In this document: positions 37,466 to 62,465 of the stretch, one piece after another
Numbering within the stretch: the first letter of the stretch is position 1
How the letters are laid out: the number at the start of each line of letters is the position of its first letter
Assembly: GCF_000150275.1 (NCBI RefSeq)
Contig: NW_002060948.1
Span: 3,609,183-3,673,182 of the forward strand
Source: Trichoplax adhaerens
Lineage: Eukaryota > Animalia > Placozoa
DNA length: 64,000 bases
Direction: 5' to 3'
Notes under the pieces: model-generated
Told to the model about the DNA's origin: nothing
The model's database searches: none
Seen by the model: only the letters and a program-made list of their open reading frames with translations
Program-made: the position numbers and the translations under genes

Positions 37466-40400
37466 ATGCAATCTCGTAGTCAATCTGATAGTGCTAACGG
37501 AACAAATGCCAAGTTAGCTCACAAGGCCAATGTAACTGCTGCTTATGAAATCCAAAAAAATTTGAAATATGATTTCAAAGATTCGTCGTTGCTTCTTACT
37601 GCGCTTGGTAAAGACAACAAATTGGATACATCTATAGGATTGCCAGGTCGTTATGGAAATCAACAAATACTAGAGATGATCGGTGATGCCTGGTTGCGCT
37701 TTGTGGTTTTATATAAGCTATACGAAATGAAAGAACATACCGATGGATCTGCTAAATCGTTTAATGACGCTACTAAATGGTTGGTCTCTAATGATACTGT
37801 CTTACCGGAAATAGGTAAAAGATTAGGTTTAGAAAAATGTATTCGAAATATTACCGATAAAAAAAAATATTTGGCTAATTACACGGAAGCAATCCTCGGC
37901 GCTGCTGTTATTGACGATCGTAATTTACATCGATCCTTTCAAGTTGTCGACCGACTCTGGTCCCCATACATCAACACTTATAAGAACAACGATAATAATT
38001 GCGATGCAAGACCGCTCTTTGTTAGCCAAGAAATAACGAATCAAAATCAAGCTAATGATGAAAAAACTCATGGTAATGATTTTCATTTACCTGAGCTCAT
38101 TCCAAATGCCGACTACAATCAAACTGATCACGATTCACAATCAAGCAAGGAGAGCTTTGCAATAGGTAACGATGATAAAAAATGTCCATATACAGCCATG
38201 GTTAATCCCGACAACGTTACGGCTACAGTTAAACCGTCAACGGAAGCACATCATTCAAATGAAAGTAATCAATTTGATACGGCTGAGTCTAATACCGTTA
38301 TAAAAGTCAAGAAAGTTGCAATTAATACGACAGTTGATAGCCACGTTGACGGCCTATCTGTAGCTCAAAGCAAGTTAATTGTGCAGAAGGCATTTAGTAG
38401 TTTTTGCAATAGTTTGAGTGTATTCCAAAAGATGGTTTCACAACTCCCAGATATTAATTGTCGACACGGGAGTGCTGGCGATACAATATTAATGAAAATT
38501 GTTACGGCAAGTAAATTAAATAATTCTAAAAAACTGGAGAGGATACAATTTTTACTCGATCATGGTGCATCGTGGAACGTGAAAAATAACGAGGGTTTAG
38601 ACGCTCTCAGTATCTGTCAGAGCAAAAATCCTGATCTTATTCTGCAGTTAAAGCGAAAGGGATTGATTAGTAATGATGGACAAATAAATGATGCAGATAA
38701 GCTTAATGATAAAGAGCAAGATAACAAGATTATGCTCAATCGGCATATAGTTGATCCTGATGCTATTAAACATAGCAATCATGTCGCATCTAATGTAACA
38801 GTTAATAGCCACACTGAAGGAAAATCGACACCTCAAAGCGATTTAATGGAGCATAAAGCATTTAGCAGTTATTGTAGTAATTTTAATATGTTTAAAAATA
38901 TTATCACGCAAGTCTCAAATGTTAATTATCGACATGGTAAAGCTGGCGAAACTATATTGATGAAAATTATTACTACAAAAAATCTAGATAATTCTGATAA
39001 ACTGCAGAGGATACAGCTTTTACGCAATTGTGGTGCGTCGTGGAAATTGAAAAATTTTGAGGGATTAGACGCCCTCAGCATCTGTCAGAGAAAAAATCCT
39101 GATCTTATGTCGCTTTTAAAACTAAAAGGATTGATTGGTAATAACGTTCAAGAAGCTCCCACTGAAATCAATAAAAAAGAGGATGGTGTTGTCTCGCCAA
39201 CCTTCAATCGAAATCAAAAAAATAAAATATGTGAATTATCGGTGGTCAAAAATGACGATCGGGCTATCGATAAAGAGCAGGAAAACATCAATAATCTGTT
39301 TTCTAATCATTGCAATAGCTTCTCAAATCTCAAGATGGCAGTTAATCAGGTTAAAGATATTAATTGTAAAAAGAATGACGATGGAGGAGATAACATTTTG
39401 ATGACTATCCTGAAATGCACAAGGCTTGCTGATGAGAAAAAGATAGAAAGGATCAGATTTCTTCTATCTCGTGGTGCTTCCTGGAAAGCTACAAATAATT
39501 CTTCCGTGAATGCAGTGAATGTTGGTTTAAAATATTGTCCACAGTTAATGAATACGTTAATAGAGCAAGGACGAGTAGATCAACATGCGTTAAAGAAATG
39601 TAGCCGGCTATTACCTACAAGCTACTCAAATCAAAACACTGTTAAAGATACTAAATTGCCTAAAACTGCAATTGTAAATGATCATATTCAACTAGTCGAT
39701 CATGCTATTAACGACAACAATAAAGCCCTATTTCCAGAACTTTATCAAGATATTGATCAATTTAAAACTGCAGTCTTAAAATTACCAGATTTGAATTCCA
39801 CTTGGATTTCAGGTAATACTATATTAATGACAATATTACAAAGTCCCTTTTTAGATAGTCAAGAGAAAATAGAGAAGATAGAAATTCTTGTACAATTGGG
39901 AGCTTCTTGGTATGCCACTAATGAGCATGGCAAGAATGCTATCGATGTAGGTTTAAAAGCATGCCCAAAGATATTGGCTAAACTTATCAGAGCGGATTCT
40001 GTAAAACAAGATAATATCTTTCAATCGAAAGTTAAAGAAAGGGCAGAACTACTAACACGTACGGGAAAATTTCAAACAGAAAATGCTTTTGATATTAGTC
40101 AAAAGGACAATGTTGTAGAATTATCCTGTCGCAAAGATAATACAAACCGAAAACTGTTTACACATTATTGTAAAGGAATGGACCGGTTTAAGGAAATTAT
40201 AAAGGAATCTAGTAACTTAAATTGTAGAAATGATGGTAAAGTAGGTAACACTGTTCTTATACTAATACTGCTAAATGAAACGATGGACGACGGTGTGAAA
40301 GTGGACAGGATAAAATTACTTGTTTCATCCGGCGCGTCATGGTATACTGCCAATAATTGTGGAATGAATGCAATTGATATTGGTTTGCAATCGTGTCCCA

Positions 40401-41710
40401 AGTTTCTGGCCGACTTAATCGAACAAGGTTTAGTCGGAGAATTATCTGAACATGATACAGATTCCTTAATTGATCAGAGCAGTAATGGAATTACAGTCTC
40501 TACTAATCAATCTTACAGTACATCTGACAGTGATGCAAGTGCTAGTACGCCATTAGTGCAGGGTCAAGAAAAAGATGATGCTATGTTGAAGTTAAGTTAT
40601 TGCAATAGTATCGATAAATTCAGAGATTCTATCCAAAAATTATCTAATATCAATGTTAGAAACTCTGGTAAGTCGGGTGATACTATCCTAATGACCATTC
40701 TACAAATTAAAAGACTAGATGAACCATCTAAAATCGAAAGAATAAAGATTCTGCTATCGTCTAAAGCTTCATGGTATGCTACTAATAATCGTGGCCAGAA
40801 TGCTATTGATCTATGCTTACAGAAATATCCAGATTTGTTAGCGAAGCTAATAAGAATGAAACTCATCAAGCAAGATGACATATTTAAATCTGTTGCTCAA
40901 GAAAAAGCTACTATGATTCAGTCTATAATTGGATCTGATCGTAATGGTAAGAGATCCGCGAATATGAAAACATGTCAAAATAGCATCGGCAGGAATGGTA
41001 ATAGCAAATTTATAGAATTGATATCCAGTACAGAAACTTTGAACGATCCTATTATATTCACGTGTTATTGCGGTAACATGGATAAATTTAAAGATGTAGT
41101 GCAGGCAGCTAAGACCCTGGATTGTAGAAATTCAGGCAAGATAGGTAATACTTTACTAATGATGCTATTGCAAAGCAAGAGATTGGATAAAAATTCTAAA
41201 ATAGAAAGAATAAAGTTAGTGGTATCTTTTGGAGCTTCGTGGTATGCAGTCAATAAACAAGGTCAAAACGCTATTGATATTGGCTTACAGTTATGTCCTG
41301 ACTTATTAGCCAGTTTAGTCGAACAAGGTCTAGTAAAATACGATAAATCTTATTGTATTAAAGACCACCAAGGAGTAGCCATCGACAATTCTTCAGTTAT
41401 GCCAGCTTCAGTACCGGACAGAAAGATACCGCCCTATTCGTCTGCTTCTAATGCGCCTTCTATACCAACCTATGGTAGTAATGCTGCTTACCCTTATATC
41501 TTTCCATCGTCTACAACACCTGCATTCAATAACAGTTTAGCACCGATAAATCATAATTATATACACTCTGGACTATATCCAAGTCAGGGACTTGTTACAA
41601 GTTCCTACATACCTGGTCAGTGGCTTGGAAATAGTCCCTATCCAGATTTAATGCCATTATTTGCTCCGCCAGTACGAAGCAAGACTCAACACCCATCTAT
41701 ACGTCTATAG
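37466..41710 (+). CDS. RNase III domain (no dsRBD) + seven ankyrin-like modules + Pro/Tyr/Ser-rich tail, intronless, ~1414 aa
   Basis: The ORF is open from TTG 37385; the first ATG is at 37466. RNase III fold motifs: IQKNLKYDFKDSSLLLTAL, signature QILEMIGDAWL (cf. ERLEFLGD), LVSN, EIGKRLGL, LANYTEAILGAAVID (cf. LADxxEAxxGAxYLD). Seven modules with consensus G(D/N)TILMxI...KIERIxxLxxxGASWxxxNxxGxxA(I/L)DI..CPxL start at ~38384, 38852, 39290, 39722, 40148, 40583 and 41051. Confidence 0.9.
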   Translation: MQSRSQSDSANGTNAKLAHKANVTAAYEIQKNLKYDFKDSSLLLTALGKDNKLDTSIGLPGRYGNQQILEMIGDAWLRFVVLYKLYEMKEHTDGSAKSFNDATKWLVSNDTVLPEIGKRLGLEKCIRNITDKKKYLANYTEAILGAAVIDDRNLHRSFQVVDRLWSPYINTYKNNDNNCDARPLFVSQEITNQNQANDEKTHGNDFHLPELIPNADYNQTDHDSQSSKESFAIGNDDKKCPYTAMVNPDNVTATVKPSTEAHHSNESNQFDTAESNTVIKVKKVAINTTVDSHVDGLSVAQSKLIVQKAFSSFCNSLSVFQKMVSQLPDINCRHGSAGDTILMKIVTASKLNNSKKLERIQFLLDHGASWNVKNNEGLDALSICQSKNPDLILQLKRKGLISNDGQINDADKLNDKEQDNKIMLNRHIVDPDAIKHSNHVASNVTVNSHTEGKSTPQSDLMEHKAFSSYCSNFNMFKNIITQVSNVNYRHGKAGETILMKIITTKNLDNSDKLQRIQLLRNCGASWKLKNFEGLDALSICQRKNPDLMSLLKLKGLIGNNVQEAPTEINKKEDGVVSPTFNRNQKNKICELSVVKNDDRAIDKEQENINNLFSNHCNSFSNLKMAVNQVKDINCKKNDDGGDNILMTILKCTRLADEKKIERIRFLLSRGASWKATNNSSVNAVNVGLKYCPQLMNTLIEQGRVDQHALKKCSRLLPTSYSNQNTVKDTKLPKTAIVNDHIQLVDHAINDNNKALFPELYQDIDQFKTAVLKLPDLNSTWISGNTILMTILQSPFLDSQEKIEKIEILVQLGASWYATNEHGKNAIDVGLKACPKILAKLIRADSVKQDNIFQSKVKERAELLTRTGKFQTENAFDISQKDNVVELSCRKDNTNRKLFTHYCKGMDRFKEIIKESSNLNCRNDGKVGNTVLILILLNETMDDGVKVDRIKLLVSSGASWYTANNCGMNAIDIGLQSCPKFLADLIEQGLVGELSEHDTDSLIDQSSNGITVSTNQSYSTSDSDASASTPLVQGQEKDDAMLKLSYCNSIDKFRDSIQKLSNINVRNSGKSGDTILMTILQIKRLDEPSKIERIKILLSSKASWYATNNRGQNAIDLCLQKYPDLLAKLIRMKLIKQDDIFKSVAQEKATMIQSIIGSDRNGKRSANMKTCQNSIGRNGNSKFIELISSTETLNDPIIFTCYCGNMDKFKDVVQAAKTLDCRNSGKIGNTLLMMLLQSKRLDKNSKIERIKLVVSFGASWYAVNKQGQNAIDIGLQLCPDLLASLVEQGLVKYDKSYCIKDHQGVAIDNSSVMPASVPDRKIPPYSSASNAPSIPTYGSNAAYPYIFPSSTTPAFNNSLAPINHNYIHSGLYPSQGLVTSSYIPGQWLGNSPYPDLMPLFAPPVRSKTQHPSIRL

Positions 41711-42216
41711 AATTTGATAAATTGCTTCATAATTAATATTAAGTATCAGTAGATCCTATACATGAATATTATAGACAGTAATTTTTGTGTATAGTATACT
41801 GGATAGCAACGCCAATTTTGTGTATTGGGCTAGTAGTATCTTATTATCGATTGATCAGTGCTAACATTAAATATCTAAGAAACCAATTTCTAGGTATACA
41901 ATGCTCGCACCAAATATAAAGTATTTATCCCGGTCTTTATGTTAGTTTCAACGTTAAATACTGTTATAACTCAAGGCAATATACGTCGTACGTATGCTTT
42001 GAAGATATAGCTTTTGAAGTTAGTATGCTGGTGGCGTAATACCGTAGTTTATAATGATATATCAGTGAAAATAAAATGATAGGTATTGTTACATTTGATG
42101 TTTAACAGTTTGGGTGGTGGTTCGGTAATTGCGTGATATATTGATTGTCTATAAGGTAACAATAACATAGTTGATTTAAAGGTGAGGGTATTTAAAACAT
42201 TTCTTAAATTAAAGTA

Positions 42217-42269
42217 ACTAGTGCAAACTCCCGTCGCTTTACTGACGGTTTACGATAATGTGCTCATTT
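42217..42269 (-). repeat. Right arm of 53-bp inverted repeat (partner 34407-34459)
   Basis: actagtgcaaactcccgtcgctttactgacggtttacgataatgtgctcattt. Confidence 0.9.
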
Positions 42270-43658
42270 AACATCTTTTACGAGGTTCAGTAACTTTATA
42301 CCGTACCGTGTAGCAGTGATTATGTGTACTAAATTTGGCCATTGATTAACTTTTGTGTAAGATTGTCTACGATAATCATGTGTAAGAATAGCCATCCAAT
42401 GTGGTCATCATGTACTTGCAATGGATACTGTTTACAAGTTAGTTATCCTATAGTAATATCGTATTTATGGCTATCATCAGTGTTCCTAGTGTTATTCATG
42501 GTTACGTCTTAATTTATGATTATGAAAAATAAAAGAATATAGCCTCAATCAATTGAAAATTTGATGTTATTTCTGGTGCTCCTTATTGAAATAAGTTGTC
42601 ATTGCTTTGATATTTCCATCATTGGAGAGTGTTATAACGTTAAGCATTTCCTCAGTATCAAAATATGCTATGTACGCGTATGCACAATATTAAATTGCCT
42701 ATTTCACTCCATACGATAGAAATTGAAAATTCTTTATTTGATATTTTGTATCGAATTGTATAGTCAAGATATTTATTATTGAAATGGACATCTATTTCGG
42801 CACCATACGCATATATATATAAAGTACTGATGATAACATGGCTTGATGAGTTAGAATACTATCGGTGGTGCGAGTGTTGATGTGGTTTACAAAAATCATA
42901 ATTTGGAGTAATTGCAGACCAGTGATGGCGGTCAAAAAATGGTATAATATATTTGCGCAATTATGAACTACAACTGATTGGAACTGACGAAAGCATGACA
43001 ACATTGCCTTTCTGCAAAGAATTGAACTTAAATTGACTAAGTGGATTGAACATAACAAGAATATCATCACGTCCATTATTGTGTAGTGAGGTAAATTTAA
43101 TAATCAATCTACCTAGAATAATTTTACTGAAAAAAAGACACAAGAGAAAGTGGCTTTTAACAATATTTGTTATATACTCCCATACGATATATTACATAAC
43201 ATACAATACTGCAGAAGGATGAAAATCTACAATGTCACACAATGATATATAAATTAGTTTAAGTCAAAGGCAGTTTAATATAAAATTTTATTAGACCCTA
43301 ATTACTCATGATAACTCTACGATAATACCAATAAGAAAGTTTGTATCGGTGTCTTTATTTTACTCCAATTTCTTTTTGAGCAGTTGGTACCATTAAATAG
43401 TGTCGAAACAAAAGTTGGCATAGATGTATCATGCATCAAGAATGAAGTCATAGCACAGAATTTGTTGAGAAATGTCAAATAACAATCATAATTATTAGCT
43501 AGCTAGTACGTATAGATGATCAATTAGTCATTTTGGACAATTTTGAACGTCCAATACTCGAGCATCAGAGGAATCTTTAAGGAGTCTAGGAAAAATAATT
43601 TTCTACAAACTCTTTCAATAAAATTGTCAAGAATTGTGGTAAGAAAAAAGTTATAGCA

Positions 43659-45041
43659 TTACGTTAACCACGGAAATGATAACTTCATATCGTTGGTATT
43701 TTGAGGATAGTCAACACAAAACTTCTTTTCGTCGCCCCAAACTTTACTTAAATCTTGAATAATGTGTTTGGAAGCAGCTTGAACCCATTTCGGATCATGT
43801 AAATATTGGCAAAGATAACATAGTGATCCGTCACTATCCACTCTCACGACTTTATGCGAAGCCTTCCATTTAAAAAAACTATTATACAAGGTTTTATTCT
43901 TAGCCACTTTCTTAATATAAGCAACTAAATCTGGCATCGATTTAAAGTCGAGTGCATTGATGTATGAACCAGGAGGGCTGGTAGCTGGACTGCTATAATT
44001 AGCACCACCAATGACGATAGGAACTGTGCCCAGTTTTAAGCCGTTGTGGTAAAATTTTTCAGTGACATAGTCTTTACAGATAAAATTCTCGAAGCTTAAA
44101 TAAAACTTATGTTCGTGTGAAATTTTATCCCAGCAATCCTTATTTCTACCACAGTTGAATTTACCGCATTTGCCATAGGAATCAATGTCAATCTGTTGAG
44201 CCAGTTTTTGAACAAATTGTGTGCGACCTGGATAGCACTGGCTTGAAGCCCAAGCAATTAACTTGGTCTTGCCCTCACTATAATCTTTCTTTGGATCATA
44301 ATTTTGGGAAAAATTTCCTTGGACAATCTCTGCATAGGGTGCGTATGCCATGCCATCCTTGGCATAGCTGTTGACAACATTAAAGATGCCATTATGGATG
44401 GATTTTATAGGTGATCCGGATAATTTTCGCGTTAACACGGGATTTTCTAAATTATGATAAACCCATATTTGACGGGGGGGTTTCTTGCTTGACGGAATGA
44501 AGCCTTTGCTTTTCATACTGGGGGCAGAACCGTGAAATACTAAAGCAGCAGCTTGTGAATATTGGCTTTTATCTGAAGTAAAGATACAGGTGACATTGCC
44601 ACATTTTACTCGGCCATAACGATCATCGGGCCATCTGCCACCGAACCAACCAGTCCAATAAAGAATGATTGGTATTTTCTTGGTTGGTTTTGTAGTAGGT
44701 CTTTTGGTGGTTGGTTTTTTCGTCGTAGGTTTATTTGTCGTTGGTTTTTGTGTCGTCGATTTTTTGGCCGGAGGTTTGGGAGTGGTGACCACTTTCTTAG
44801 CAGACGATCCCATCGTCGTTGTCGGCTTGATTGTCGTAGTAGCATTTATAGGGCTGGTAGTCTGCGATAGTTTCTCCTTTCTCCCTTTATTACTATGATT
44901 ACTAAAGCTAGAAATCATTTTATATTCTACAATACCAATTCCTTGAATTTTTATAGCATATAACGTTGCTAAAATGACAATAGCCACTAGACCTAGTACA
45001 ATCCATAAGCGTTTCCTTGTCGTTGATGTAGTATTATTCAT
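43659..45041 (-). CDS. Alpha-1,3/1,4-fucosyltransferase (CAZy GT10), type II membrane protein, 460 aa
   Basis: N-terminal TM (LWIVLGLVAIVILATLYAI) and a Thr/Lys/Pro-rich stem. GT10 motifs: ILYWT, C..TSDKS...AAALVFH, PPRQIWVYHNLENP, IDSYGKC, KFYLSFENFICKDYVTEKF, VPIVIGG, PPGSYINALDF, YNSFFKWK. Confidence 0.95.
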   Translation of the reverse strand: MNNTTSTTRKRLWIVLGLVAIVILATLYAIKIQGIGIVEYKMISSFSNHSNKGRKEKLSQTTSPINATTTIKPTTTMGSSAKKVVTTPKPPAKKSTTQKPTTNKPTTKKPTTKRPTTKPTKKIPIILYWTGWFGGRWPDDRYGRVKCGNVTCIFTSDKSQYSQAAALVFHGSAPSMKSKGFIPSSKKPPRQIWVYHNLENPVLTRKLSGSPIKSIHNGIFNVVNSYAKDGMAYAPYAEIVQGNFSQNYDPKKDYSEGKTKLIAWASSQCYPGRTQFVQKLAQQIDIDSYGKCGKFNCGRNKDCWDKISHEHKFYLSFENFICKDYVTEKFYHNGLKLGTVPIVIGGANYSSPATSPPGSYINALDFKSMPDLVAYIKKVAKNKTLYNSFFKWKASHKVVRVDSDGSLCYLCQYLHDPKWVQAASKHIIQDLSKVWGDEKKFCVDYPQNTNDMKLSFPWLT

Positions 45042-46489: not shown

Positions 46490-46966
46490 ATAGCTTTCTT
46501 GTCAAATGATCCATTTGTGACGACTATAATATAGGATACTAACTACAAATACACTCTTAACTATCGCAGTTATAAGTACAGTTTACTGCAGGATAATAAG
46601 CGTACAAAGACTCACTTAACTGCGTCGATAGTCATGAGTTTTCTTGTCCAATAATCCATTTGTGACAACCATCATATAGGATAATAACTACAAATACAGT
46701 CGAACTATGGCACTTATAAGTACAGTTTACTGCAGGATAATATCCGCACAAAGACTCATTTAACTACCTCGATAGTCATGAGTTTTCTTTCCAATAATCC
46801 AATTACGACGACTATAATATAGGATAATAACTACAAATACAGTCGAACTATGGCACTTATAAGTACAGTTTACTGCAGGATAATATCCGCACAAAGACTC
46901 ACTTAACTACCTCGATAGTCGTGATGAGTTGTCTTGTCAAATAATCCATTTATGACGACTATAGTA
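46490..46966. repeat. Tandem repeat, ~145-bp unit, ~3.3 copies
   Basis: 'tcttgtc(a/c)aataatccatt' (with variants) at ~46496, 46641, 46785 and 46931; the full copies contain 'ataagtacagtttactgcaggataat'. Confidence 0.9.
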
Positions 46967-47630
46967 CAATAGTCATGGAAAGCACAGTGTCGTTTTCTCA
47001 TCAACTAGTCGATTGGTGCGACTAGAGTACAAGATAATAACTATAACTACCGTTAAAAATTAATGGACTAGCATAGTCATTGATCTTGCTCAATTTGGGA
47101 CTATTACAATATAGTACAATTTACTTCAGGAGAATAACTACAAATACTCACTTATTCATTTATCACCGCCAATAGTCATGGAAAGCACATTGTCGTTTTC
47201 TCATCAACTAGTCGATTGGTGCGACTAGAGTACAAGATAATAACTATAACTACCGTTAAAAATTAATGGACTAGCATAGTCATTGATCTTGCTCAATTTG
47301 GGACTATTACAATATAGTACAATTTACTTCAGGAGAATAACTACAAATGCTCACTTATTCATTTATCACCGCCAATAGTCATGGAAAGCACATTGTCGTT
47401 TTCTCATCAACTAGTCGATTGGTGCGACTAGAGTACAAGATAATAACTATAACTACCGTTAAAAATTCATGGACTAGCATAGTCATTTTTCTTGTTCAAT
47501 TTGAGATTATAGTACAGTTTACTTCAGGAGAATAACTACAAATGCTCACTTATTCATTAATCACCGCCAATAGTCATGGAAAGCAAAATGTCGTTTTCTT
47601 GTCCAGTAGTCGATTGGTGCCGACTAGAGT
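46967..47630. repeat. Tandem repeat, ~203-bp unit, ~3.3 near-identical copies
   Basis: 'caatagtcatggaaagca' at 46967, 47170, 47373 and 47568; the copies are almost identical. Confidence 0.95.
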
Positions 47631-50600
47631 GGAGTTGACTCTAGGGCTCCAAACAAGTGATATTGTACAGTCTGTACTATGATGATCGTGCAAAAGTAGC
47701 GTTTTGTATAGGTACTGTCCAACCATCGTCGACAGTACCTATAGTGTCATTATCGACAGGTGTAGCCTCCATGGTCAATTGGTCAATGGTCATGTGGTTC
47801 ATGTCATGTGGTCTGGTAGACAGCAGCCTTTGAAAGGATTGACTAGCGGATCGTGTGGGTAAATTGCTAAATTAGCTGCAGACGAAGGCGGCAAAGGTGG
47901 AATCTTTCATCAAAAGGTACAGCAAATTATTTTATTCGACTAAAATTGTCTTTGAAAATCAGGACTACGACATGTGTTTTCAAGAAAATCACTAAGGTGT
48001 TTCAATGAAAATGGCCCCAACAGCATCTATTGGCACACTTTCAAGACGGGCAAGCCATTGTCACTGGTTCAATGTAGGGTAATAGGGGGTAGTCAAGCAA
48101 AAAAATTTCAACCAGTGGAAAACTATTCCAACAACGATTCATTCATATACCCTCTCTTGCATTCCATAACTAGCTTAGATTGATCGGAGAAAAGGAAATT
48201 CTAGCAAAGAAATAACTTTCTCTTACTCTCAACAGGATATCTGGACTAGCGTACAGCTGAACGACTACTTCCACAGTTCATTCAAGGATGTTGTTGAACC
48301 CTACTCCAAATACGCACTGTTGAGCTATGTTGACATGCAACGTTGCAATATGCAGTGTTGATCCACTTTTCTCTATCCTACTCATTAGACTATATAGACT
48401 GCAATTGCAGATTATCAGAAAGCAACTCTTTTACCCTCTTTGGATTCCCTGCTATTCTACTACAAATGATAGATCATGTCATCGCTGTCTGTTCAATAGC
48501 AATCACTTGGACAATCCATGATCGATGGACGAGTTTTGGCGCCAGTCTTGACTCCACTTTACTTGACTCTTCATCAGCCAAGACTAAATCACTTACAAAA
48601 TCCCATTTTGAATTCAAAAGATTATTCACACTATCACAAGCTGATGGCCATACATTCGTTTAGTTTTCAAGTGAGAAAATTACTTTGTACTGCTGTTTTC
48701 AATAGTATTCAACACCATATAGTATACTGTGCTTGCAGGACAGTACTGTAGTGAAATTCTCACTAGCTTATCGAGTCAACATTCATAGCTTTCCTAATAA
48801 TAATAAACTTCATGGCAGCGTGCGCTTGGATGTAGCTTTTAAATACGCGTAGATTAACAGTCAATCCTATCTGGAAAAATGCATCGAACAGCAGCAGTTA
48901 TACATTAAAGTCCTCAATCAATCGAGCAACCAATGATAGCATCATTTCCTTACCAAGCCAATATACTGTACGCATATCGAAAACTGAAAAGCATTCTACG
49001 GCAGTCGGTCAAGGTGTTCATTGCCTCTGTAATCACTACAACAAATCAACATTCGTCTAGCTAGACAATGATAGTACACTGCATAGATGCGTAGAATTGC
49101 TTTTCCAATCGTGTTAACGTTACAATGACTCTTACTTTCTTCATCAGTCCACAGTATCAAAGACGTAAGGATGCTAGTAGTAAAGACCATTCCAAACCGT
49201 CTTGACAAAGTGATTTTTTTGTTTTTTTTCTACAGGCAAATACACCTCCCCGTTGATTAAAAATGTTCAAATTAATTCGTTCATGTGAGTATTCCTATAT
49301 ATCTCAATATTCGTTGTACTATACTGTAGATGCATTTATACTAGTTAGCCAACGCAATTAGTGACTATTTTGAATGCTATTAATAATCCATTGCTTTTGC
49401 GCCTAATATACTTGTACCATCATATTGTTCCTTTCTTCTCAGTAGAATAACTCTGTAAATAAACACTTTGAACAATATTTTCTTAACAAATTTGGCATTA
49501 CGTCAAGCGTAGTAGACTTAATCATAATTTTTTTTTTTATTGAACATAACTCGCTTTATATCATATGAAGTACTCTAACTTTATGGTATATTGCTATGAG
49601 ATGGTTACAACATTGAAATCTCAACCGATATAGTTTACATATAGTTTACTTAACGGAAACTTTTAAAATTGACGTCAAACATTTATTTTTTCAATCTTTT
49701 TTGAAGTAGATAGTATCGTTAAATAACTAAAACTGATTTGTTAACGGATTTCATGTAGACTTTAATCCTTTTTATCAGTTGATGATCTATTCAATCGACT
49801 CTTAGGATCAATACGTATACAATAGAATATCCATTCGAAAGTAATCTCATATCTTTGTAATCTTCTTACCTCTTGATATAGTCTAAATAAAACGATTAGT
49901 AATTCTTTATCTTTAAGTGTTTATTTTACAATCTCACAATAAACAAAGATAAGGCTAGTTATCATTTAAGTATATAATTAAAAGAATTGATGATCAACTA
50001 TAGGATAAGAGAAATATCTTACACGTCTATTCATATAAAATTTGCTTATTCCTTACAGCTATTGGATGATATCGCCTTGAGTCAATTCTGATATTCTAAT
50101 ATCTGTGTGAACAATTATACTTTCGATTGGATCGTCACAAATTGTTGATCCATGGTTATTAATAATTATTAATTTACCATCAGTACGATCTTGACGTTAA
50201 ATATAGAATACATCCCCTTTGCGTAATACTAGATTTTTGAACGTTTTGAATGTCCCAAAATTAAATTTTTGGGTCTGCATTTTTCTTAATTTGCTTTATT
50301 TATAGATTACGTTCAACAAGTATCATGTTTAAATATTTTAATCGTGATTGGCCATAGTAAATACATACTGGTTTAACTATTGATACTACTGTAGTCATTA
50401 TAAAATGTAAAATTTTTTCTGAAAGGTATTTTATCCCTAAATAGACACTTTACTATAGATGTATTAAAATAGCATGAAGTAGTAAGAAGTTTTCATTTGC
50501 TAGCAAAGTAATGCATTAAATTATACTAAAGTGAAAATTTGATTTTTAATACAACCAGTTATACCATCGTCCTTGAAAACTTTTTTCGAAAGAAATGACC

Positions 50601-50799
50601 CGGTTAGTGACTAAGTTCAAATACGTATAATGATTCATACGTACATCAGCACCAGCATTAGCTATAGCCTATACGTGTAGATATACTGCAACTGCCATAG
50701 TAATGTCTCTGTGTAGATTTTATACTATATCGATTACAGATGATTAAGATTTAAAGATTAAGTTTACATTTCTAAACTGTATTTACGTACGAATAACAG

Positions 50800-53700
50800 A
50801 AAAGATTGGAAGAATGGAGAGATGCCGCTCGTCAAGGTGATATCAATACTGTTGAAAACTTAATTAAGCAGGGGATGATGAAAGATGTCAATGAAGATGT
50901 AAGGAAACCAAAAAGTATCGCGATACGACGTAATATCATACTATCTTATTCTCCTTATATTACTTAGAGTAGTGCACAAACCATTTTGCTGCAATCTGTA
51001 GTTAATAGTGCTATCACTTGCAAATATTAGCTACATCCATACGTATGGACACTAATCTAATGTTTCAATAAACCTATATTATATTTTAGCAAAATTAGGA
51101 ATTGCTTATATTGTAACTACTGTGTTAAACGTATTTTAATAGTAATTTCTTGCACTCTAGTTACACTTGTTCAAATTCATAATATTAGAGACATCATTAC
51201 TGATGTTGTATGACGTTACTATTTGTTGTAAGATATATTTATAGAAAACGTAATTATCTACCAACGATGACTTTATTTATTCTTCTCATTATAAATTTAA
51301 TCATTAAAATTTACCCTCATAACTTCCCGTAAAATAAAACCTTCAATACGTACTAACAATTTAATAATTTCCCAATAGTATGTACTGCAGGGACTTTTTA
51401 TTGCTTCACAAGAGGGCCATAAAGATATTGCTGGATTACTTATCAACAACAATTGTCCTGTAAATGGTGTTGGTGAGGTAATTTTAAAATCAAACTAGCC
51501 TATTCATTAGTAGTCAATGGAAATGTAGTATTGAATCAACCGAAATGTGTAACCCTTACCTAATTAAACTGTCCCGTTAATTCGTTTCTAGCATCAGAAA
51601 ACTGCAATTTTTCTTGCTGTAGAAGGAAACAAGAAAGACATGGTAGAATTTTTAATTGATCATGGAGCTTCCCTGAATCATCAAGATCAAGTAAGTCCAT
51701 TACTATGTACTTGCACGCATAATATAATGAATCAATGATGATTACAAAGTAAATCAAGTGAATTTATAGCACCTTAATTATTAACGCAGTAATACCAAGA
51801 TCAAAATATCAAATCGTAGTATCTACTTCTTACTTATGTATTTTTGGATAGTAATTCATTGCTGCCTTTATTTGATAGAACTCGCATAACGTATTGATGC
51901 TTGCTGCTCGGCTCGGTTTTCAAGAAATGGTAGACCTTTTAATACAAAAAGGTTGCCCCGTGGATTACAGAGACGTTGTAGGTTTAACACTGTAATAAGT
52001 GCTTTACAATCATACTGTAGACATTTTTGTACATTCCCACAATGTCAGTAAGCTAGCACGTAGCTTAAACATGAACGATAGCGTATGCTCTAAGTGGCTA
52101 CGGTGTTACAATATGTATAACTACTTATATACTCCTGTTTTATAAAATTTTTAATGCTAGGAGGGCAAAAGTGCGTTAATGCACGCTATTATTGTTGGTA
52201 ACTGTGAAATTGCAATACTATTACTTAATCGAGGTTCCAAAGTAAACGCTACAGATTTGGTAAGGACATACAGATACTAAGATGGCTGTAACGAGTTATT
52301 CTGAATTAGGTCTATTCAATATACTGTAAATGGTATACTTATTATGCTCCCCTCTTTTTGATGATTATACCAGAAAGGAACTAGTTGTTTACATTACGCT
52401 GTTATGCATCGTCGCACCGATATTATTCCCATTCTATTTCAGTTTAAAGCTTATAAAGATGCCACTGATAAGGTAATATAACAAGATATACATTTTTATC
52501 TTGGTTGAACACGCTAAAAAATGATAAATTTCTCTTTTTTGACTGCTATACCAGCAAAATTCTAATGCATTAATGCACGCCATTAGTATGGGAGAAGTAG
52601 AGATAGTTAGAATGCTATTGGAATACAAATGTAGCGTGGAAGCTGTTAAAAGAGTTAGTTCGAAGTGAATTGAGTTATATCAGAGTACTCGATCTCTAAT
52701 TGGTATCTACTGTGGTTGTTTTTAGCACAAACTTTGGATTGCTCTGCACCAAGCCGCATGGGAAGCTGATGAAGATATTACCAAACTGTTACTCGAATTT
52801 GGCTCTGACCCTAATAGTACCAATAGCGTATGTTAATATGCAGTGTTAATACCCCGAAGTTAGAAATTAATTTGTGCCAGCAATCGAATCATTTGCAGTT
52901 ACAGCCTTGCGGTTACGGAATTAGTGCTTTATATTTAACAAATTTCCTAAATCAATGATTGAAGCGTATGTTTTGATGATTTTAGGAAGGTATAACAGCG
53001 ATTATCAGCGCTATTCAAGGCGCGAAACATAAGTCTGTTCTGGATGCAGTTATCAGAGTTATTGGCGTTTTAGCTGGGTATGGCTGTAACGTTAATGCCG
53101 GCGATAAAGTAAGTTATTACTAAATAGCTAGCTATCGATAATCGCTCAGTATGTATACAGGATGACACATGAGATATTTAGTTGTATGCCCTTGAACTTT
53201 TATTAACTAATTGAGATTAATTACCGAAAAATTCTGTATACGCTAGTACAGTACAGTTGGGAAATTGTAGACTATTTCATAGGGCACCTACCAGCACTGT
53301 GTTATGACATTCCTACTGCAATGCATATTTACCATACACTTTACAAGTATTGTTTACGAGTTTGTCATTAATAATACACCATGAGTTGCTTGTCTTGTTA
53401 TAAACATAGAATTTTTCCTTGCGTATAATCAACTAATTTACAGCATTAGAAAATGCGTAACCAAATGTCATTTCCTGATTTTAGCGCTTTGGTGACTCGG
53501 CTATTATGTACGCAGCTCGGTTTGGCTTTCATGAAGTAATCGAAGCATTAGTACATCTTGGTGCCGATCCTAACTACCTAAACAAGGTTAATTGCTTAAA
53601 TAAGTTAAAAAAGTGACAAAATTAATCAGCTTAATGCTAGTTTTTGTACTATAAAATTTAAATAGATTGAAAATTTTAGTATAAACTATTGGATATCACA

Positions 53701-55942
53701 TCATAACTTTAATATTGTAGCGGTATTCTGTAGACATTTTCTAGTAGTCCTTGTATCTTGCCATGGTGACTAATTTATGCTACATAGTTAATCTTTAGGA
53801 ATACTCTTAAAATTCGTGTAGGAAAAATATCTTAAATTTGCCTCAAATTAGTAACTAAAATCTTAAATATTGATAATAAACTCTCTGTAATATCGAGGTT
53901 AATAATTTTTTCTACTTAGAATAATGAAACGCCTGTAATAACCTGTATCAAACATTATTATGGATCTAAAAAAGCCCTTTATCTTCAATCTATTGAGACT
54001 TTGGCCAAAAGTGGAGCAATCCTAGACTATTGTGCCGGAGTAAAAATTATTAATTTACTATCGACTAATGTTATACAGTACCTTTCTATAGATACTTGCT
54101 AATAAACTTGAAACAGTAAAGATGTTAGAGATTTTCGTAAATCTTATCTTAAAATGCCTGTACAGGTATCCATTTGTATAGCAATTCATGTCATTAACCT
54201 AGACTAAGGCATTCAAATTGTATAGGGACAAACGCCACTATTGTATGCGACGCGCCTAGCAAGAGATGAATGTGTGAACAAACTACTAAGTCTGGGTGCG
54301 AATCCTCATATAACAGATGAGGTGAGCGTTCGCTACTTTTAATAATACACAAGATGTTATCAACCGTTTATTATTCATGTTTTGCTTTATTATATTCTAC
54401 TGTCGTACCTTTTCTGTTAATACGTATGATTGCTATAAAGTATTTTATCAATATATTTCTTAAATTGTATAGTTATAATATGAATTTCAATTTATTAGAA
54501 TCAAGTGAATGCACTTATAGTAGCTACCCAGATTATTCCACGGAATCGTTTAGTTAGAGGCCATTACCAACGTATTTTGACTTACCTGCTTAAGACTGGC
54601 GTTAACGTTAATCATCAAGACGCGGTAATTAATTGAATAATTATAGTTAACATTATCGTACTGTAATACTGTATACAGTAATATCGTGAAGATGTAGTGT
54701 ATAGTACTGTGTAGGTATCACTGTCATAACATTGATATAAATAGAAAGCAAGAAAAGTCTGTCTAACCAAAACAAGTTATCTCCTCTACTAGGCTGGAAA
54801 TACCGCTATTATATTTGCGGTAAAAAACGAGCAAGATCGGTACATTAAAGTTCTTCTTAATAACGGTGCAAATCCTTATATTACTAACAAGGTATCTATC
54901 CAAAATGAAATGGACTTATAACCTATGGGGATAGTAGTGTTATTAAAGACTGTATTTGATTAATCTAGGAAGGGATATCCGCATTGCAAATATGTGAAGC
55001 AGTTAAAGATTCATATATTAAAGAGCAATTCCGGTACTTTCAAGAGATACGACGGGTAAAGTCACCAGAATTAGTAATGAAAATCTTTTTAGTTTTATCG
55101 TTAAATCATGTAGTATTAAAAAGTTTAAGACGAACAGTCGTATAGGTGTATAAGATCCAGTTCAATATTTATTGCAGCAGTTTTGTAATGCTATTCATAT
55201 TGCATTACGCTAAGCTAATTGCTCTATCCGTGGGAATAGTTATAATCTACTTTTTTGATACTTATGTTGATAACCCTCATATATCCAGTGGTTAGCTTTA
55301 TCCTTACGGATTCTTTATAACCTTCTCAAGGAGGTCTACGAAGGAGCCGCAGTTAGCGATACCGTTGATGGGAATCCCAGTAATCTGTACCAGAATAATT
55401 CCCCTATAGAAAGCACAGATGATAACACGTCAACTGATGCTGCTAAACCCATTAATCTACTCCCGAACAGTCCTTCTCTAGCAAGTACAGATGATAACAA
55501 GTCAACTGATGTTGCTAATTCCGTTAATCTACTCCCGAACAATCCTCCTGTAACAAGCACAGATAGTAACAAATCAACTGGTGAAACTGATGCGACAAAA
55601 GGTGCTAGCAATGATCGTATGATTGATCCTGCGATAACCCCAGCTGTATCAGATGACCAAAAGGAAACAAGTCTAGAAGTAGAGGCCCAAAAACGGTACG
55701 TCGTGATTGTAGCTGCTATAGTATGATGTGCAAGGTTTTCATTAACTGGCTATGACTCATTTTTCAATGTTAGCTAATGGAATAAACATTGTAGATGTGT
55801 TCAGTGTACTATATTTCCAGAAAGTCTTAAAATATTATTATCTAGCTAAGTATTCATAGACAATTATCTTTATTTCTTTCGTAGAGGGCAAGAAACTCAC
55901 CAAAATGAGCAAAGGCGTTCGAAACGATTACGATTAAAGTGA
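50800..55942 (+). CDS. Ankyrin-repeat protein (~14-15 repeats, about one per exon) with low-complexity tail; start exon unresolved
   Basis: Phase-0 exons of mostly ~90-125 bp start at ~50800, 51391, 51592, 51879, 52161, 52374, 52555, 52726, 52986, 53485, 53920, 54226, 54499, 54793 and 54969. Examples: GLFIASQEGHKDIAGLLI, EGKSALMHAIIVGNCEIAILLLNRGS, GQTPLLYATRLARDECVNKLLSLGANP. These are followed by an exon at ~55331-55695 and a last exon at 55886-55942 ending RRSKRLRLK*. Confidence 0.88.
55382..55585 (+). repeat. Coding 72-bp (24-aa) tandem repeat x3 within the ankyrin gene
   Basis: NLYQNNSPIESTDDNTSTDAAKPI / NLLPNSPSLASTDDNKSTDVANSV / NLLPNNPPVTSTDSNKSTG. Confidence 0.85.
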
Positions 55943-57458: not shown

Positions 57459-58100
57459 ATGAATTTCTCTATGAATTTATCGATTTATCCATCAGTCATA
57501 CCAAACGAAATTCGTGTCGATATTGAAAACATGCAGAAAAGACTTGGTTATCATATTAAAAATATCAATTTACTTCTTCAAGCTTTAACAAGGCAAAGTG
57601 CAATTCGCCAAGGTATACACTATGCTAGTAAAAGCAACAATCAACGATTGCAATGGGTAGGTAGTAATATGTTTCACAGTGGGATCGTTTATAAATTGTA
57701 CGAAAAATACGCTAATAATAGTTACATTAGTACCGATTACTTAAACAAAGTAGCAATTAATATTACATCCAATATGGCGTTAGTTGCTGAAATTGGTAAA
57801 CGAATTGGTTTAGCAAGTTGTGTCTTTCGTGGATCAGATGAGGAAATTATCACTTCAGAAATATTAGCTCATACATTTTTGGCCATCTTAGGCTCGATAA
57901 CACTCGATGACGGCGGTCAAAAAGCAGTGCATGATGTTATTGAACGCCATTGGAAATGGTTTCTTGATAATCCTGAAGAGTCATTTAAAAGACGGCCCTC
58001 ATCATTTCATACCCGTATGCCACCTCGTTCAGCGACTATGCCTTCACGACAAAGAATTCGTAGTTCTGATTTCCCAAATCATGGCACTGAAGTCTTATAG
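57459..58100 (+). CDS. Stand-alone RNase III-like protein lacking catalytic residues (pseudo-nuclease), ~200 aa; true 5' end may be an upstream exon
   Basis: MQKRLGYHIKNINLLLQALT, NQRLQWVGS (signature with E->Q and D->S), YKLYE, EIGKRIGL, LAHTFLAILGSITLDD (D->H, E->L). It shares YKLYE, EIGKRxGL and AILG..DD with the 37466 protein. There is a possible acceptor 'ccatcag|' at ~57495. Confidence 0.8.
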   Translation: MNFSMNLSIYPSVIPNEIRVDIENMQKRLGYHIKNINLLLQALTRQSAIRQGIHYASKSNNQRLQWVGSNMFHSGIVYKLYEKYANNSYISTDYLNKVAINITSNMALVAEIGKRIGLASCVFRGSDEEIITSEILAHTFLAILGSITLDDGGQKAVHDVIERHWKWFLDNPEESFKRRPSSFHTRMPPRSATMPSRQRIRSSDFPNHGTEVL

Positions 58101-59038
58101 GTAAAAAAGAGACAAGGCTACTCAAAAGGGAAGCGATGATTTTATCCACTTGTAAATCTAACATCACCTATTTAATCACTTTATTGGTTTATTTTTTGAC
58201 TCTTGATTCAAGAGCTGTTAAATTGATAGCTTAATCGATTGAAGCAATGATAGACTATTTCTTGGTTGATGCGCTTATCGAGAGCAATAATTATACTAGG
58301 CATAAAGTGATGTATGTCAATATAATCGGCCGACAGTTATCAAGGATATACTACCATTAATTTATAATTCTATAATTTGTTTTCTGTGTACTGACTTCAT
58401 GATGTATAGCATAACAGCGAGTAACCTTTTAACTGTAACCATGACAATATTACTACATACATTAATCATTATTTGGTAGTATCGATCATCATACTAGAAT
58501 GATTTGACTAACAAAATAGAAAGGTTAGAGCAAATTGAACTAAATCTATCTCAACAGTTACAACATTGGTTTAACGCTATTGCCAGTGAGAGTGCTGTAA
58601 AAGTTATCGTGTAGCAGTGGATTATAATTAGCAGTCTACCTTTCTATTTGTATCGAATTCTTTACGACACTATTATTTGTTACCTTGCATGAAGATATAT
58701 TACAATAAAAGATAGAGTCAATAAAAGCAACGTTTATTGGATTAAAGTAATCCGAATTGTTATAAGCAACAGGTTACAGGATCTACTTGAAGTCAACAAG
58801 GTATACTAACCTATTTTAATAATAATCATAATGAATAATAAAACTTCAATTGAGTGCGGTACATGATCTATTGGCTAGCAGGTACGATATCGATTAAAGA
58901 TAGGCCATTAAATTATGAATTAGCTGATATCATTGCTATGAAAGGTTAGAATCATATCCTTTTACAACGGCATCTCTATATCCATTTTCAACAATCTGGT
59001 GGTTATTGATGGTATTGATGGAGAAAGTTGAACTAGTG

Positions 59039-62000
59039 TTAGCTTTCTTCATCAGTACTGTCCGAGTCGCGGTCGCTAAGATCATTTAGATCGAATTCCT
59101 CGGCAAGCTTTGGACAGAATCGATGCACCAAATCGACACCTGTTTCGTCATTAAAATTCCTTCTCTTCCATGATGCTCCATACTTTAGCAATAATTGAAT
59201 TCGTTCCACTTTGTCCGAAAAGGAAAGGCCTTTCGTTCTTATCAACAGATGTATTGGTAGATCGCCTTTACTCGATTGGGTATGGTAGTTAACGTTGTTA
59301 ATACCAAGGACAATTCCTTCGATATCCTCCAGTGTACTAGTTTGACTACATAGACAACTGGGTAATTTGTTATGATCTGCCACAGGTAGTGGTTTCTTGC
59401 CTTTTCTCATAGGATTTACAAAATACGATTCACGGTAGAACGTTCTACTCGTTGATTCCATATTTGTTTGATTCTGATTGATGGCGTTTCGTTTTGGCCT
59501 TTGCTTGTTTACTCTAGGCCATTTGTTCTTTCCACGTACTTTTGTTGAAGCTGCATTAGCATTATTTACATCGGTAGCATGCCATTTTGGATTAGAGCTC
59601 TTTTCCGCTGAATTGTTCATAACATGATCATCATTCGTTGGCTCAACTTTAACCTTAATGGTGGTTAATTTGTTGACATTCGGTTTGGTTTCTTGGAAAT
59701 GATTATTATGGTTATAAACAGTAGCAGAACTACCAGTAGTAGGTGTATCGACCTGAGTGTCAGTGGGTTCTAATTTTATAGTAGGCTTTGAACCAGCAAG
59801 CTTACCATACGATTGTTTTGACTGATTGATATTTTCATTTCGATCACGTAAATCATCCGTTAGATCCCTTTTGACGCTTTCTTTACAATCTTCAACTTGT
59901 TCAATAAAGTCGCTTGAAATATTTCCTGCTAAATCTCTACCACTCTCTCCACAATTATTCCTCTTATCCCAGTCAGCACCATATTTTAATAAAAATCGCA
60001 AACGGTGTATTTTTTCCCTTTGGGATAATGTACATGCTCTAATTAACGCCATGATTAAAGTATCGCCACGTCGATTAGGATAACGCCGATTGACATCAAT
60101 ACGACGCAATTTTAATGCTACTAGTCTGAGATTGCAATCGACGGTAATAATTTGTCGAAAAATCAATTTTAACGTTGTATCTTCATAGCCCAATTCTGTA
60201 TGATTTTGTTCCATGTATCGTTTTTGATCTTTATGTGATTCTCTATCACGAAGTGCTGCTCTGAATGCTTGTCCATAACTTGATTCTTCAATCCATTGAA
60301 CTAATTGTGGGCAGAATTGGTACAAGACATCGATAGCACTAATGTTGCCGCTATCTGTAGCATTCCAATCAGCATTGCAATCTAATAATAACTGAATTCG
60401 TTTCCATTTATCTTTATCACTTAAGCTACTAGCCACCAGTACCTTAATTAAAGGCGTATAACCATTTACAGTTGAGTCAGGCTCGTTGATGCAAGAACTT
60501 TCACGTTGGATAATCGACTGTAAAAGTTTAAAGTCGATATTGGGCTGATCGATTGCATGATATAGATCAGGAATAACGGACGTGTTATTTCCTTGAGCTG
60601 GACGTTTTTCCTTGACACTAGCGCTTGATGATGATGCTACCTTACAAGATATCGATTCTAGTACACTTTTAATTTCATTTTTGAATAATTTCTCAATCAC
60701 ATTACCGACATATAACAAGCTACCATCGCTATCTTTGTAGACTAGGCCAACCACAGCAAAGAGTAATCGATCGTAGGAGCTGCATTCACCATTATCCATT
60801 AATTCTGCCAAACCACTGCGTTTACCAACCTAGTGAATAAATTTCGAATCATTTAACCATGATATCAATCGCCGAGAAAGCTTAAGGTAATCAAAATACT
60901 CATTCTTATGGGCATCCTAGATGAAAAAAGATGATTTGACTTCTATTTGTAGTGGCAAGCAATCTATTGAACATTCATTGTAAAACATTGCTAATGTAGG
61001 CGACTTTGCGCATTTTCTCTATGGGGTGATGTCAACAAGACCAAGCATAACTCTAGGTTAAAAGAAGAAATATTTCTTCCTAGTGCTTTCTACTGCTTCC
61101 GATAAAGTGGTTTAAAGTTAGCCTACATTGGAGTATGTTTCCTGTCTGCATTCTTGTCAATGGGCCATTTGATCTCAGCAAAAGGAAATTCAAGATTGCT
61201 ACTGTAGACGACGATTACTTTGCCTATTTTTGTCCATGGCCATTGGCCAAGCTCGACTCGACCCTAAAGGAATTGCATTTCTTATTTTTATTGCTTTTTA
61301 CTGCTTATTCTATAATCATAATGTGAATTCAACGTAAACCTAGATTGTAGCCTATTTCCTGTCAGCATTCTTGTTTATTGGCTAATCATTCATATAATGA
61401 TAATGAATGCATGAATCGAAGCAAAAGGAAATTGAAGATTGCTATTCTAGGCGCCCATTATTGTGTGCATTTCTAGAGGGGCTTTGAAAAGGGATTTTTG
61501 TTGAAAAGTCCATGGCCAAAGCATATAACTCGACACTAAAGGGACTTATTTATTAATTTTTACTGCTGCTAATTCGATCATCATAAGGCGAGTTACAATT
61601 TAACCTAGATGGTAGCATGTTTCCTATTGGCATTCTTGTGGCTAACAAATAATTCAATGGTAATGGATGAATTCATCAGAGCAAAATGAAATTCAAGATT
61701 GCTCTTCTAGGCGCCCGACTATTTTGTCTATTTTTATAGGGGCTTTGAAGACAGCGCTAAAGCAATTATTTCTTATTATCGTTTTCCATTGCTGCCAATC
61801 ATGGAGACTAAAGGTGAATTGAAATTAAAGGCGTATTTGCATTCTTGTCGCCTACAAGTTTACTAGCAATAGATGCTTGCCTTCCATTTCATTAGCAATG
61901 GACATGGCAAAAAAGAGCATGGAAGAGTGGCAGTTTTTTTAACCCGACTCCAGACTTGATCCAGTCTATCGTCTATTGACATTTACTGTTGCAACATGTA

Positions 62001-62465
62001 GGAAGCAAGCCTAGAGAATTATGTTCAAGTCGGATGGATCATGACTGACGCCATGATGGTAATTTGGTGTTTGTGCTGCCTTTCGTTCATGCTCAAGGAA
62101 TAAAGATGGAACAATTTGTTGCAGCCATGATAGCACTTGCTTGTCGTCTACCATGCAATCTACCTCCTACTAAAACATGACTCCTATGTAGAATTTTCAT
62201 ACCTCGTTGACAACATCGCTCTCTAAAAGCCATCGAACGAAGTGGTGGGCTGAATCTTGACTGATAAAGCCTTGATTATGAGGTATAATCCTTCCCTCGA
62301 AATAAAGCTTAAGAAATCGCTTGCCTCGACCAATAGGATCTTCATCATTGGCCGACCAGACAGGGTAATCCACACTCCACATTGCATCTCTTAATAAGTT
62401 TGGATTTTGAATTTTATAACCCGTTTTCTCATGGAATATTTGCGCTCGGCGATTTTGCGAATCCT
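59039..62465 (-). CDS. Degenerate RNase III-like domain + three ankyrin-like modules; at least 2 exons, start exon upstream unresolved
   Basis: Exon 62465-62203 (acceptor ttcttcttgtcttgttag, donor GAG|GTATGA) encodes FHEKTGYKIQNPNLLRDAM...GKRFLKLYF...WLLESDVVNE. It splices in phase 0 (acceptor ttcactag) to exon 60829-59039, VGKRSGLAEL...DRLLFAVVGLVYKDS...VIEKLF, recreating the EIGKRLGL motif across the junction. Three modules follow: GYTPLI..KWKRIQLLLDCNADW, GDTLIM..KIHRLRFLLKYGADW and GDLPIH..KVERIQLLLKYGASW. Confidence 0.82.
61120..61860. repeat. Degenerate tandem repeat (~215-265-bp unit, 3+ copies) inside the intron of the 62465-59039 gene
   Basis: 'tttcct....gcattcttgt' at ~61138, 61355 and 61620, with a partial copy near 61836. 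The three full copies are followed by 'aaa(g/t)gaaatt(c/g)aagattgct'. Confidence 0.8.

Follow-up and report, generated by a model that had tools for sequence, protein, structure and literature searches.

A Placozoan Cluster of RNase III-Fold Genes with Ankyrin-Like Modules: Probably a Domesticated, Mostly Non-Cutting Family of Bacterial Type

Class 1 ribonuclease III (RNase III; Rnc) and Mini-III contain a single nuclease domain, and the same fold is found in Dicer and Drosha. In plant RTL4/NFD2 (PDB 9h4a), in mitoribosomal mL44 and in the KREPB partners of the trypanosome editosome, the RNase III fold is degenerate and catalytically inactive and is used as a structural or dimerising unit; none of these proteins carries ankyrin modules. 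In RNase L, ankyrin (ANK) repeats and a ribonuclease-type domain are joined in one polypeptide. Described here are three RNase III-fold genes (g1, g2 and g3), two of which also encode an unusual ankyrin-like module of ~95 amino acids (aa), in a 64,000-nucleotide stretch of the Trichoplax adhaerens genome (assembly GCF_000150275.1, contig NW_002060948.1, positions 3,609,183 to 3,673,182, forward strand; "the window", from whose first letter all coordinates are counted). The three-gene cluster is probably, though far from certainly, a placozoan-restricted, domesticated and mostly non-cutting scaffold family derived from a bacterial-type gene.

The first gene, g1 (37466–41710, plus strand; TRIADDRAFT_57519, ortholog TrispH2_004532), is an intronless open reading frame (ORF) of 1414 aa and is named "RNase III domain-containing protein" in UniRef. 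Its RNase III-like domain (37541–37990, plus strand; aa ~26–175) is followed by a disordered linker, by seven ankyrin-like modules (38384–41338, plus strand; aa 307–401, 463–557, 609–704, 753–847, 895–990, 1040–1135 and 1195–1291) and then by a Pro/Ser/Tyr-rich tail. The domain was matched by a hidden Markov model (HMM) of the bacterial family described below (E 1.6e-22), and the modules were seen as tblastn self-hits and with a module HMM (E 1e-34 to 1e-40). In Pfam, g1 gave PF00636 at 25.6 bits, slightly under the cut-off of 27, and clear ANK families (Ank_4, 61.5 bits). The second gene, g2 (57459–58100, plus strand), consists of a single exon for a 213-aa RNase III-like protein without any module; it was matched by PF14622 at 42.5 bits (cut-off 35) and by the bacterial-family HMM with E 2.5e-29.

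The third gene, g3 (TRIADDRAFT_57523/TrispH2_004536; Trichoplax sp. H2 model P0154), lies on the minus strand in three exons. Position 62465, the coordinate originally given for the gene, is the acceptor of exon 2; the start codon lies in exon 1 (62899–62884), which comprises ATG and five codons and is followed by a GT donor at 62883. Exon 2 (62203–62465) covers the first half of the RNase III-like domain, which is strongly degenerate and has lost the region of the signature motif. Exon 3 (59039–60829) encodes the second half from the shared VGKRSGL motif onwards, together with three modules (60559–60275, 60166–59876 and 59359–59075, minus strand) and a long disordered linker. Each of the two introns begins with GT and ends with AG, and the second (62202–60830) splits the domain just ahead of the shared motif. 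The exons were searched singly, and the H2 ortholog P0154 (a database protein, 99% identical) was used for whole-protein comparisons. No RNase III match was obtained for the exons in Pfam, where only ANK families were found (Ank_4, 26.2 bits). The whole g3 protein was aligned with the full-length profile of the bacterial family at 97.3% and E 2.7e-11 in hhalign, the alignment covering the RNase III part and a module. Within the linker, a short basic island is kept between two placozoan lineages while the rest of the linker is divergent; this island could be a nuclear localisation signal. Two side observations concern the same gene: the second intron holds three diverged direct copies of a ~250-bp unit (61110–61750), and a 303-aa fragment (P0157; TRIADDRAFT_62709, partial) that is at least 90% identical to g3 is located on a separate 7.3-kb T. 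adhaerens scaffold, where it may be an allelic piece, a duplicated piece or an assembly leftover.

As the original prediction had stated, the clustered genes are related to one another. The RNase III regions of g1 and g2 share 29% identity (E 1.8e-14, comparison inside the window), and the N-terminus of g3 aligns with the g1/g2 profile across 131 columns (hhalign 77%, E 2e-5). A motif likewise noted earlier, E[IV]GKRxGL, is present in all three genes; of 159 proteins compared, with the top 150 of 1.84 billion representatives among them, only the seven placozoan entries contain it, and the non-placozoan relatives have (I/V)A-x-x-L-x-L at the same position. The motif is a derived character common to the placozoan copies. 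The proposed module counts (seven in g1, three in g3) were recovered by tblastn and the module HMM, with none in g2.

Trees of the RNase III domain were poorly resolved, with a g3 branch of 3–4 substitutions per site. A free tree of 96 rows separated the three placozoan domains; when placozoan monophyly was imposed, the log-likelihood rose by 12.6 (approximately unbiased (AU) test, p 0.63), and the apparent split was therefore dropped. Monophyly of the three domains is accordingly not rejected, and it is favoured by the restriction of E[IV]GKRxGL to placozoan entries; the earlier claim that the three domains are each other's closest relatives holds to this extent. In a tree of 54 rows, g1, g2, the module family and the helicase fusions described below form one polytomy, set apart (97/92) from a clade of classical-ANK and rnc-like proteins. 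The modules gave a clearer grouping: one branch (Shimodaira–Hasegawa-like approximate likelihood-ratio test (SH-aLRT) 91) divides all 13 placozoan modules from the bacterial and rotifer modules, a single group holds the seven modules of g1 (SH-aLRT 89), and every module of g3 is paired with the corresponding module of a second placozoan-like lineage (SH-aLRT 96–99). It follows from these groupings that the g1/g3 split is older than the amplification of modules in g1 and that the three-module state of g3 is old.

Structure models are in agreement with these assignments. An AlphaFold2 (AF2) model of g1 (residues 1–420, 15-row alignment) was confident for residues ~10–175 and ~299–400, with a disordered linker in between; the predicted local distance difference test score (pLDDT) was mostly >85 in the RNase III domain and 85–97 in the first module. 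When the first block was submitted to Foldseek, plant RTL4 9h4a (template modelling (TM) score 0.82) and the nuclease domains of Aquifex, E. coli, Campylobacter and Thermotoga RNase III were retrieved. In the model of P0154, the helical repeat modules are confident and match RFXANK, ANKRA2, tankyrase ankyrin repeat clusters (ARCs) and DARPins, and the N-terminal block matches Aquifex RNase III (TM 0.51). Both models were built from homolog alignments, so that they are supportive of the sequence comparisons and not independent of them.

Compared with the described systems, the placozoan proteins agree with Rnc and Mini-III in the fold (Foldseek target-normalised TM-score 0.50–0.77), and g2 resembles Mini-III in being a nuclease domain alone. 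They differ from Rnc in that a double-stranded RNA-binding domain (dsRBD) is absent (no dsrm in Pfam) and catalytic residues are missing; TIGR02191, which has a cut-off of 166 bits, was matched at only 42 and 56 bits. Among PDB entries, RTL4/NFD2 ranks first for g2 in sequence (E 3.9e-8) and for g1 in fold. Membership of mL44 was rejected, since g2 reached only 20.2 bits for PF22935 (cut-off 27) and g1 gave no match to it. The best PDB sequence matches of g1 belong to Drosophila Dicer-2 RNase IIIb (E 2e-6), a weak similarity; a Dicer or Drosha relative was rejected, as the original prediction had held, since each protein has one RNase III domain only, and no helicase, PAZ, dsRBD or second RNase III domain was found in g1, g2 or g3 with Pfam. 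The likeness to RNase L is an analogy only: its nuclease is of the KEN type and not RNase III, its ANK repeats are N-terminal (the reverse order), and it contains a pseudokinase that the placozoan proteins do not have. Membership of the ankyrin superfamily, finally, is indicated by the Ank_4 matches of g1 and g3 and by the fold matches of the P0154 model.

Word-indexed protein searches gave no relatives beyond placozoan proteins. When the g1/g2 profile was run with HMMER against the 1.84 billion representatives, 3871 matches were obtained, and the best non-placozoan ones among the best 150 fall into two classes. The first consists of helicase fusions (P0004–P0008, P0011 and P0014; 1135–1277 aa, E 1e-40 to 1e-23) in which an RNase III domain is followed by an Upf1/IGHMBP2/MkoA-like superfamily 1 (SF1) helicase, in some cases by a CCCH zinc finger, and by a second RNase III domain. 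The two fusions that were checked (P0004 and P0008; L004:10001-13831 and L005:10001-13834) are located on bacterial contigs with lptC, mlaE, rpoN, uvrC, serS and ftsK. As an observation in its own right, the top non-placozoan matches of the profile thus present on bacterial contigs a Dicer-like combination of a helicase with two RNase III domains.

The second class consists of metagenomic proteins of ~300 aa in which an RNase III domain at the N-terminus is joined by a low-complexity linker to one module of the placozoan type at the C-terminus. An HMM built from ten placozoan modules found exactly one module in each of a dozen such proteins (E 1e-12 to 1e-21), in which the catalytic residues E..D and D..E are preserved. 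This family (for example P0009, P0010, P0012, P0013 and the gene on contig L102) is the closest to the placozoan proteins in its RNase III domain by HMM (E 1e-22 to 1e-29), and has the same module, the same domain order and no dsRBD; it differs from them in its single module and intact site, the placozoan genes having 0, 3 or 7 modules, degraded sites, introns in g3 and the GKRxGL motif. Contig L102 carries its family gene (4187–5176) with uvrB, ispZ, a ProP-like transporter, tsaC, cmk-rpsA and lapB, a gene order that we infer to be of the gammaproteobacterial type; on contig L007, the neighbours are a HepT/MNT toxin–antitoxin pair and an SLT-LysM transglycosylase. A third contig of bacterial type (L089:1642-4259) carries two family genes in tandem, both with intact RNase III motifs. 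In scans of GTDB genomes and JGI metagenomes with the family alignment, a generic peptide pattern of RNase III determined the outcome: nearly all matches were canonical rnc, and one was a full-length member, that of L102; plasmids searched with tblastn gave only canonical rnc. A giant virus as donor is unsupported, the matches on IMG/VR viral contigs being weak and devoid of the module.

Further relatives combine an RNase III domain with classical ANK repeats and have Fic-Ank, TraG, integrase and transposase genes as neighbours; their ANK parts show a weak likeness to Legionella Dot/Icm Ank effectors. One bacterial-type contig (L006:1-9698) contains two RNase III–ANK genes with ~7 kb between them, in the vicinity of transposases and a TraG-like gene. 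Among the 25 matches whose source names were looked up, the only other named animal record is the bdelloid rotifer Didymodactylos carnosus (P0016/P0153; CAF1442757.1, CAF1284399.1), with an RNase III domain, two of the special modules and EF-hands. Its domain and modules group with bacterial ones (the domain with bacterial P0009), and the protein represents either another acquisition by an animal, independent of the placozoan one, or contamination of the assembly.

The catalytic state was read from alignments with the module-bearing relatives and with Dicer-2 RNase IIIb, the four metal ligands being E and D of the signature motif and D and E of the second motif. The bacterial-type module-bearing relatives have E, D, D, E in 12 of 13 rows, the remaining one (P0028) having Q at ligand 3. 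In g1 the residues are E, D, N, E, and in g2 they are Q, S, H, L; in g3 ligands 1 and 2 are unalignable within the signature region, ligand 3 is tentatively D (hhalign) and ligand 4 is F. Both g2 and g3 are hence predicted from these residues to be catalytically dead, which bears out that part of the original prediction. The Asn of g1 occupies the place of the Asp of the D-x-x-E motif, corresponding to D1810 of human Dicer RNase IIIb, a Mg-binding hotspot residue, so that full activity is doubtful. In the E. coli enzyme, alanine substitution of the equivalent residue, D114, weakens the activity and does not abolish it. The earlier description of g1 as probably active is lowered in view of the third ligand to possibly weakly active.

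In a Logan assembly (run SRR30664517), an ortholog of g2 (77% protein identity) is followed by one of g3 (53%), arranged as in Trichoplax, and on the basis of this synteny only the sequence is taken to be that of another placozoan lineage. Against the ortholog of this second lineage (L001), g2 gave a ratio of nonsynonymous to synonymous substitution rates (dN/dS) of 0.14 at dS 1.0; for the C-terminus of g3, dN/dS was ~0.2 at a saturated dS of 1.75. These ratios indicate that the two "dead" copies are functional genes.

The cluster is encoded in the nuclear genome of the host, and contamination is excluded. The 213-aa protein of g2 is matched exactly on the 5.98-Mb T. adhaerens scaffold DS985246.1 (GCA_000150275.1) and, in an independent assembly, on the Trichoplax sp. 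H2 contig NOWV01000030.1; the neighbours are eukaryotic (a GT10 fucosyltransferase gene, a multi-exon classical ankyrin gene and, just outside the window, an NSUN-type methyltransferase); the GC content of the cluster resembles that of the host; and g3 contains introns.

According to the explanation that we favour, the ancestor would have been a bacterial-type gene for an RNase III nuclease domain with one ~95-aa ankyrin-like module and no dsRBD. By comparison of the genes, transfer from bacteria to placozoans would have preceded the divergence of the two sampled lineages and would have been followed by tandem duplication and by amplification of the module to seven copies in g1, while g3 has three copies and g2 none; g3 would have gained its introns, and the active site would have decayed. 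The present proteins would act mainly without cutting. Their RNase III fold would be a platform for dimerisation, and probably for binding of double-stranded RNA (dsRNA), on which g1, g2 and g3 could form homo- or heterodimers, the ankyrin arrays would recruit protein partners with g2 as a partner free of modules, and g1 would be at best a weakened Mg-dependent nuclease. For the functional part of this explanation, namely that the fold has been kept for dimerisation and perhaps dsRNA binding and that the modules are protein-binding arrays, confidence is somewhat below even; there is an analogy with other dead RNase III-fold proteins such as RTL4/NFD2 and mL44.

Several points weigh against the domesticated bacterial-type family. 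Transfer may have run from eukaryotes to bacteria, or an ancient eukaryotic gene may have been lost elsewhere. The RNase III-domain tree is a polytomy in which the g3 branch is too long to be placed, and the nesting of the placozoan genes within bacteria therefore rests on similarity and common architecture. Three of the four module-family contigs inspected look bacterial and the fourth (L008) is uninformative, and the GTDB and JGI scans did not identify a donor taxon. The dS of g3 is near or past saturation, and an Asn at the metal-ligand site could still permit some catalysis, in which case g1 would be a real enzyme.

By the explanation put forward in the original prediction, g1 would be an active, ankyrin-regulated RNase III with which g2 and g3 heterodimerise as parts of a strand-specific nickase, as adaptors or as inhibitors, in a pathway directed at RNA or at viruses. 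Dimers are the working form of RNase III domains, and the PDB matches are in line with this; g1 keeps three of the four ligands on a confidently predicted fold, and dead paralogs under purifying selection stand next to it. We nevertheless consider this explanation unlikely, for the residue lost from g1 corresponds to the Mg-binding D1810, neither a dsRBD nor another RNA-recognition domain was found with Pfam, and the architecture would have been inherited from bacteria and not put together for an animal pathway.

Decidedly less probable still is a decoy function, in which the dead host copies would bind the active RNase III–ankyrin proteins of intracellular bacteria through the dimer interface or the modules and would poison them, trap them or occupy the same host targets. 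Both domains are common to the host copies and the bacterial enzymes, and the mobile surroundings and weakly effector-like ANK parts of the classical-ANK relatives would suit such a role, as would the statement in two studies (PMC6784892, PMC6879607) that placozoans always carry intracellular bacteria. On the other hand, the second study gives only 6 ANK genes for the Rickettsiales symbiont of H2 (PMC6879607), no retrieved family member was found in, or linked to, known placozoan symbionts, the sole well-resolved bacterial context is that with gammaproteobacterial-type gene order, and host and bacterial domains are only ~25–33% identical. If it were true, an early-branching animal would have captured an effector-type gene and built a dominant-negative defence, or a means of symbiont control, from the invader's own weapon.

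A vertical eukaryotic origin, by which the genes would be a diverged offshoot of Dicer, mL44 or RTL-type proteins that acquired ankyrin repeats in placozoans, is given the same low standing as the decoy. It would account for the best PDB matches, Dicer-2 RNase IIIb for g1 and NFD2/RTL4 for g2, and for a faint RM44_endonuclease match. That match is under the cut-off, however, and the helicase fusions (on bacterial contigs where checked) and module-bearing metagenomic proteins are far ahead, with up to 155 bits, the remainder of the best 150 being mostly proteins of 130–700 aa. In proteins encoded on bacterial contigs, moreover, an identical module follows the RNase III domain on its C-terminal side, and both g1 and g2 are intronless.

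That the genes are transfer relics in decay with no present function, as the lost catalytic residues, the extremely diverged g3 domain and the long disordered linkers might suggest, is very improbable, and the pseudogene reading was rejected in view of the intact 1414-aa ORF of g1, the dN/dS of 0.14–0.2 and the conserved synteny, which, like the module-by-module orthology, has been kept in a lineage with only 53–77% protein identity.

All components of the domesticated family are of known kinds, namely the RNase III fold, ANK repeats, dead-enzyme paralogs and horizontal transfer. No family dedicated to the combination of RNase III with an ankyrin module was found in Pfam, NCBIfam or PADLOC; the PADLOC anti-phage models did not match g1, g2, P0154 or bacterial P0010, and literature searches returned no description of such a family. 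A 2013 list of bacterial-like Trichoplax genes does not mention RNase III or ankyrin. The claim of a new architecture is thus upheld as far as curated families and papers are concerned and is narrowed by the same layout, with an intact site, in the ~300-aa proteins and by the rotifer protein. What is at hand is an undescribed family combining RNase III with the special module and without a dsRBD, distributed over bacterial-type contigs, placozoans and a bdelloid rotifer (one protein record), and with it a natural example of a transferred nuclease that would have been retained while its catalysis was dismantled. Trichoplax is without Pasha and recognisable microRNAs (PMC3563456), and any further proteins with an RNase III fold are relevant to its handling of dsRNA and of the obligate bacteria inside its cells.

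Long ORFs are few in the window, whose DNA is AT-rich (GC ~0.28–0.41). Between g1 and g2 lies the multi-exon gene with classical ankyrin repeats (49244–55939, plus strand), for which the Trichoplax sp. H2 model has 678 aa; when the special module was compared with it, nothing significant was obtained (best tblastn E 0.059), and the gene therefore seems unrelated to the RNase III–ankyrin family. The GT10 (α-1,3-fucosyltransferase-type) gene is a single exon (43659–45041, minus strand) with a weak, sub-threshold N-terminal Pfam Mucin match, and 30/45-nucleotide tandem repeats are located inside it (44673–44777). Two intergenic tandem arrays (143 bp × 3.2 and 203 bp × 3.3, 89–94% matches) stand side by side at 46495–47630. 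Near the 3′ end of the classical ankyrin gene, a 72-bp tandem repeat of 2.5 copies (55403–55580) is contained in a 91-aa ORF on the minus strand (55336–55611).

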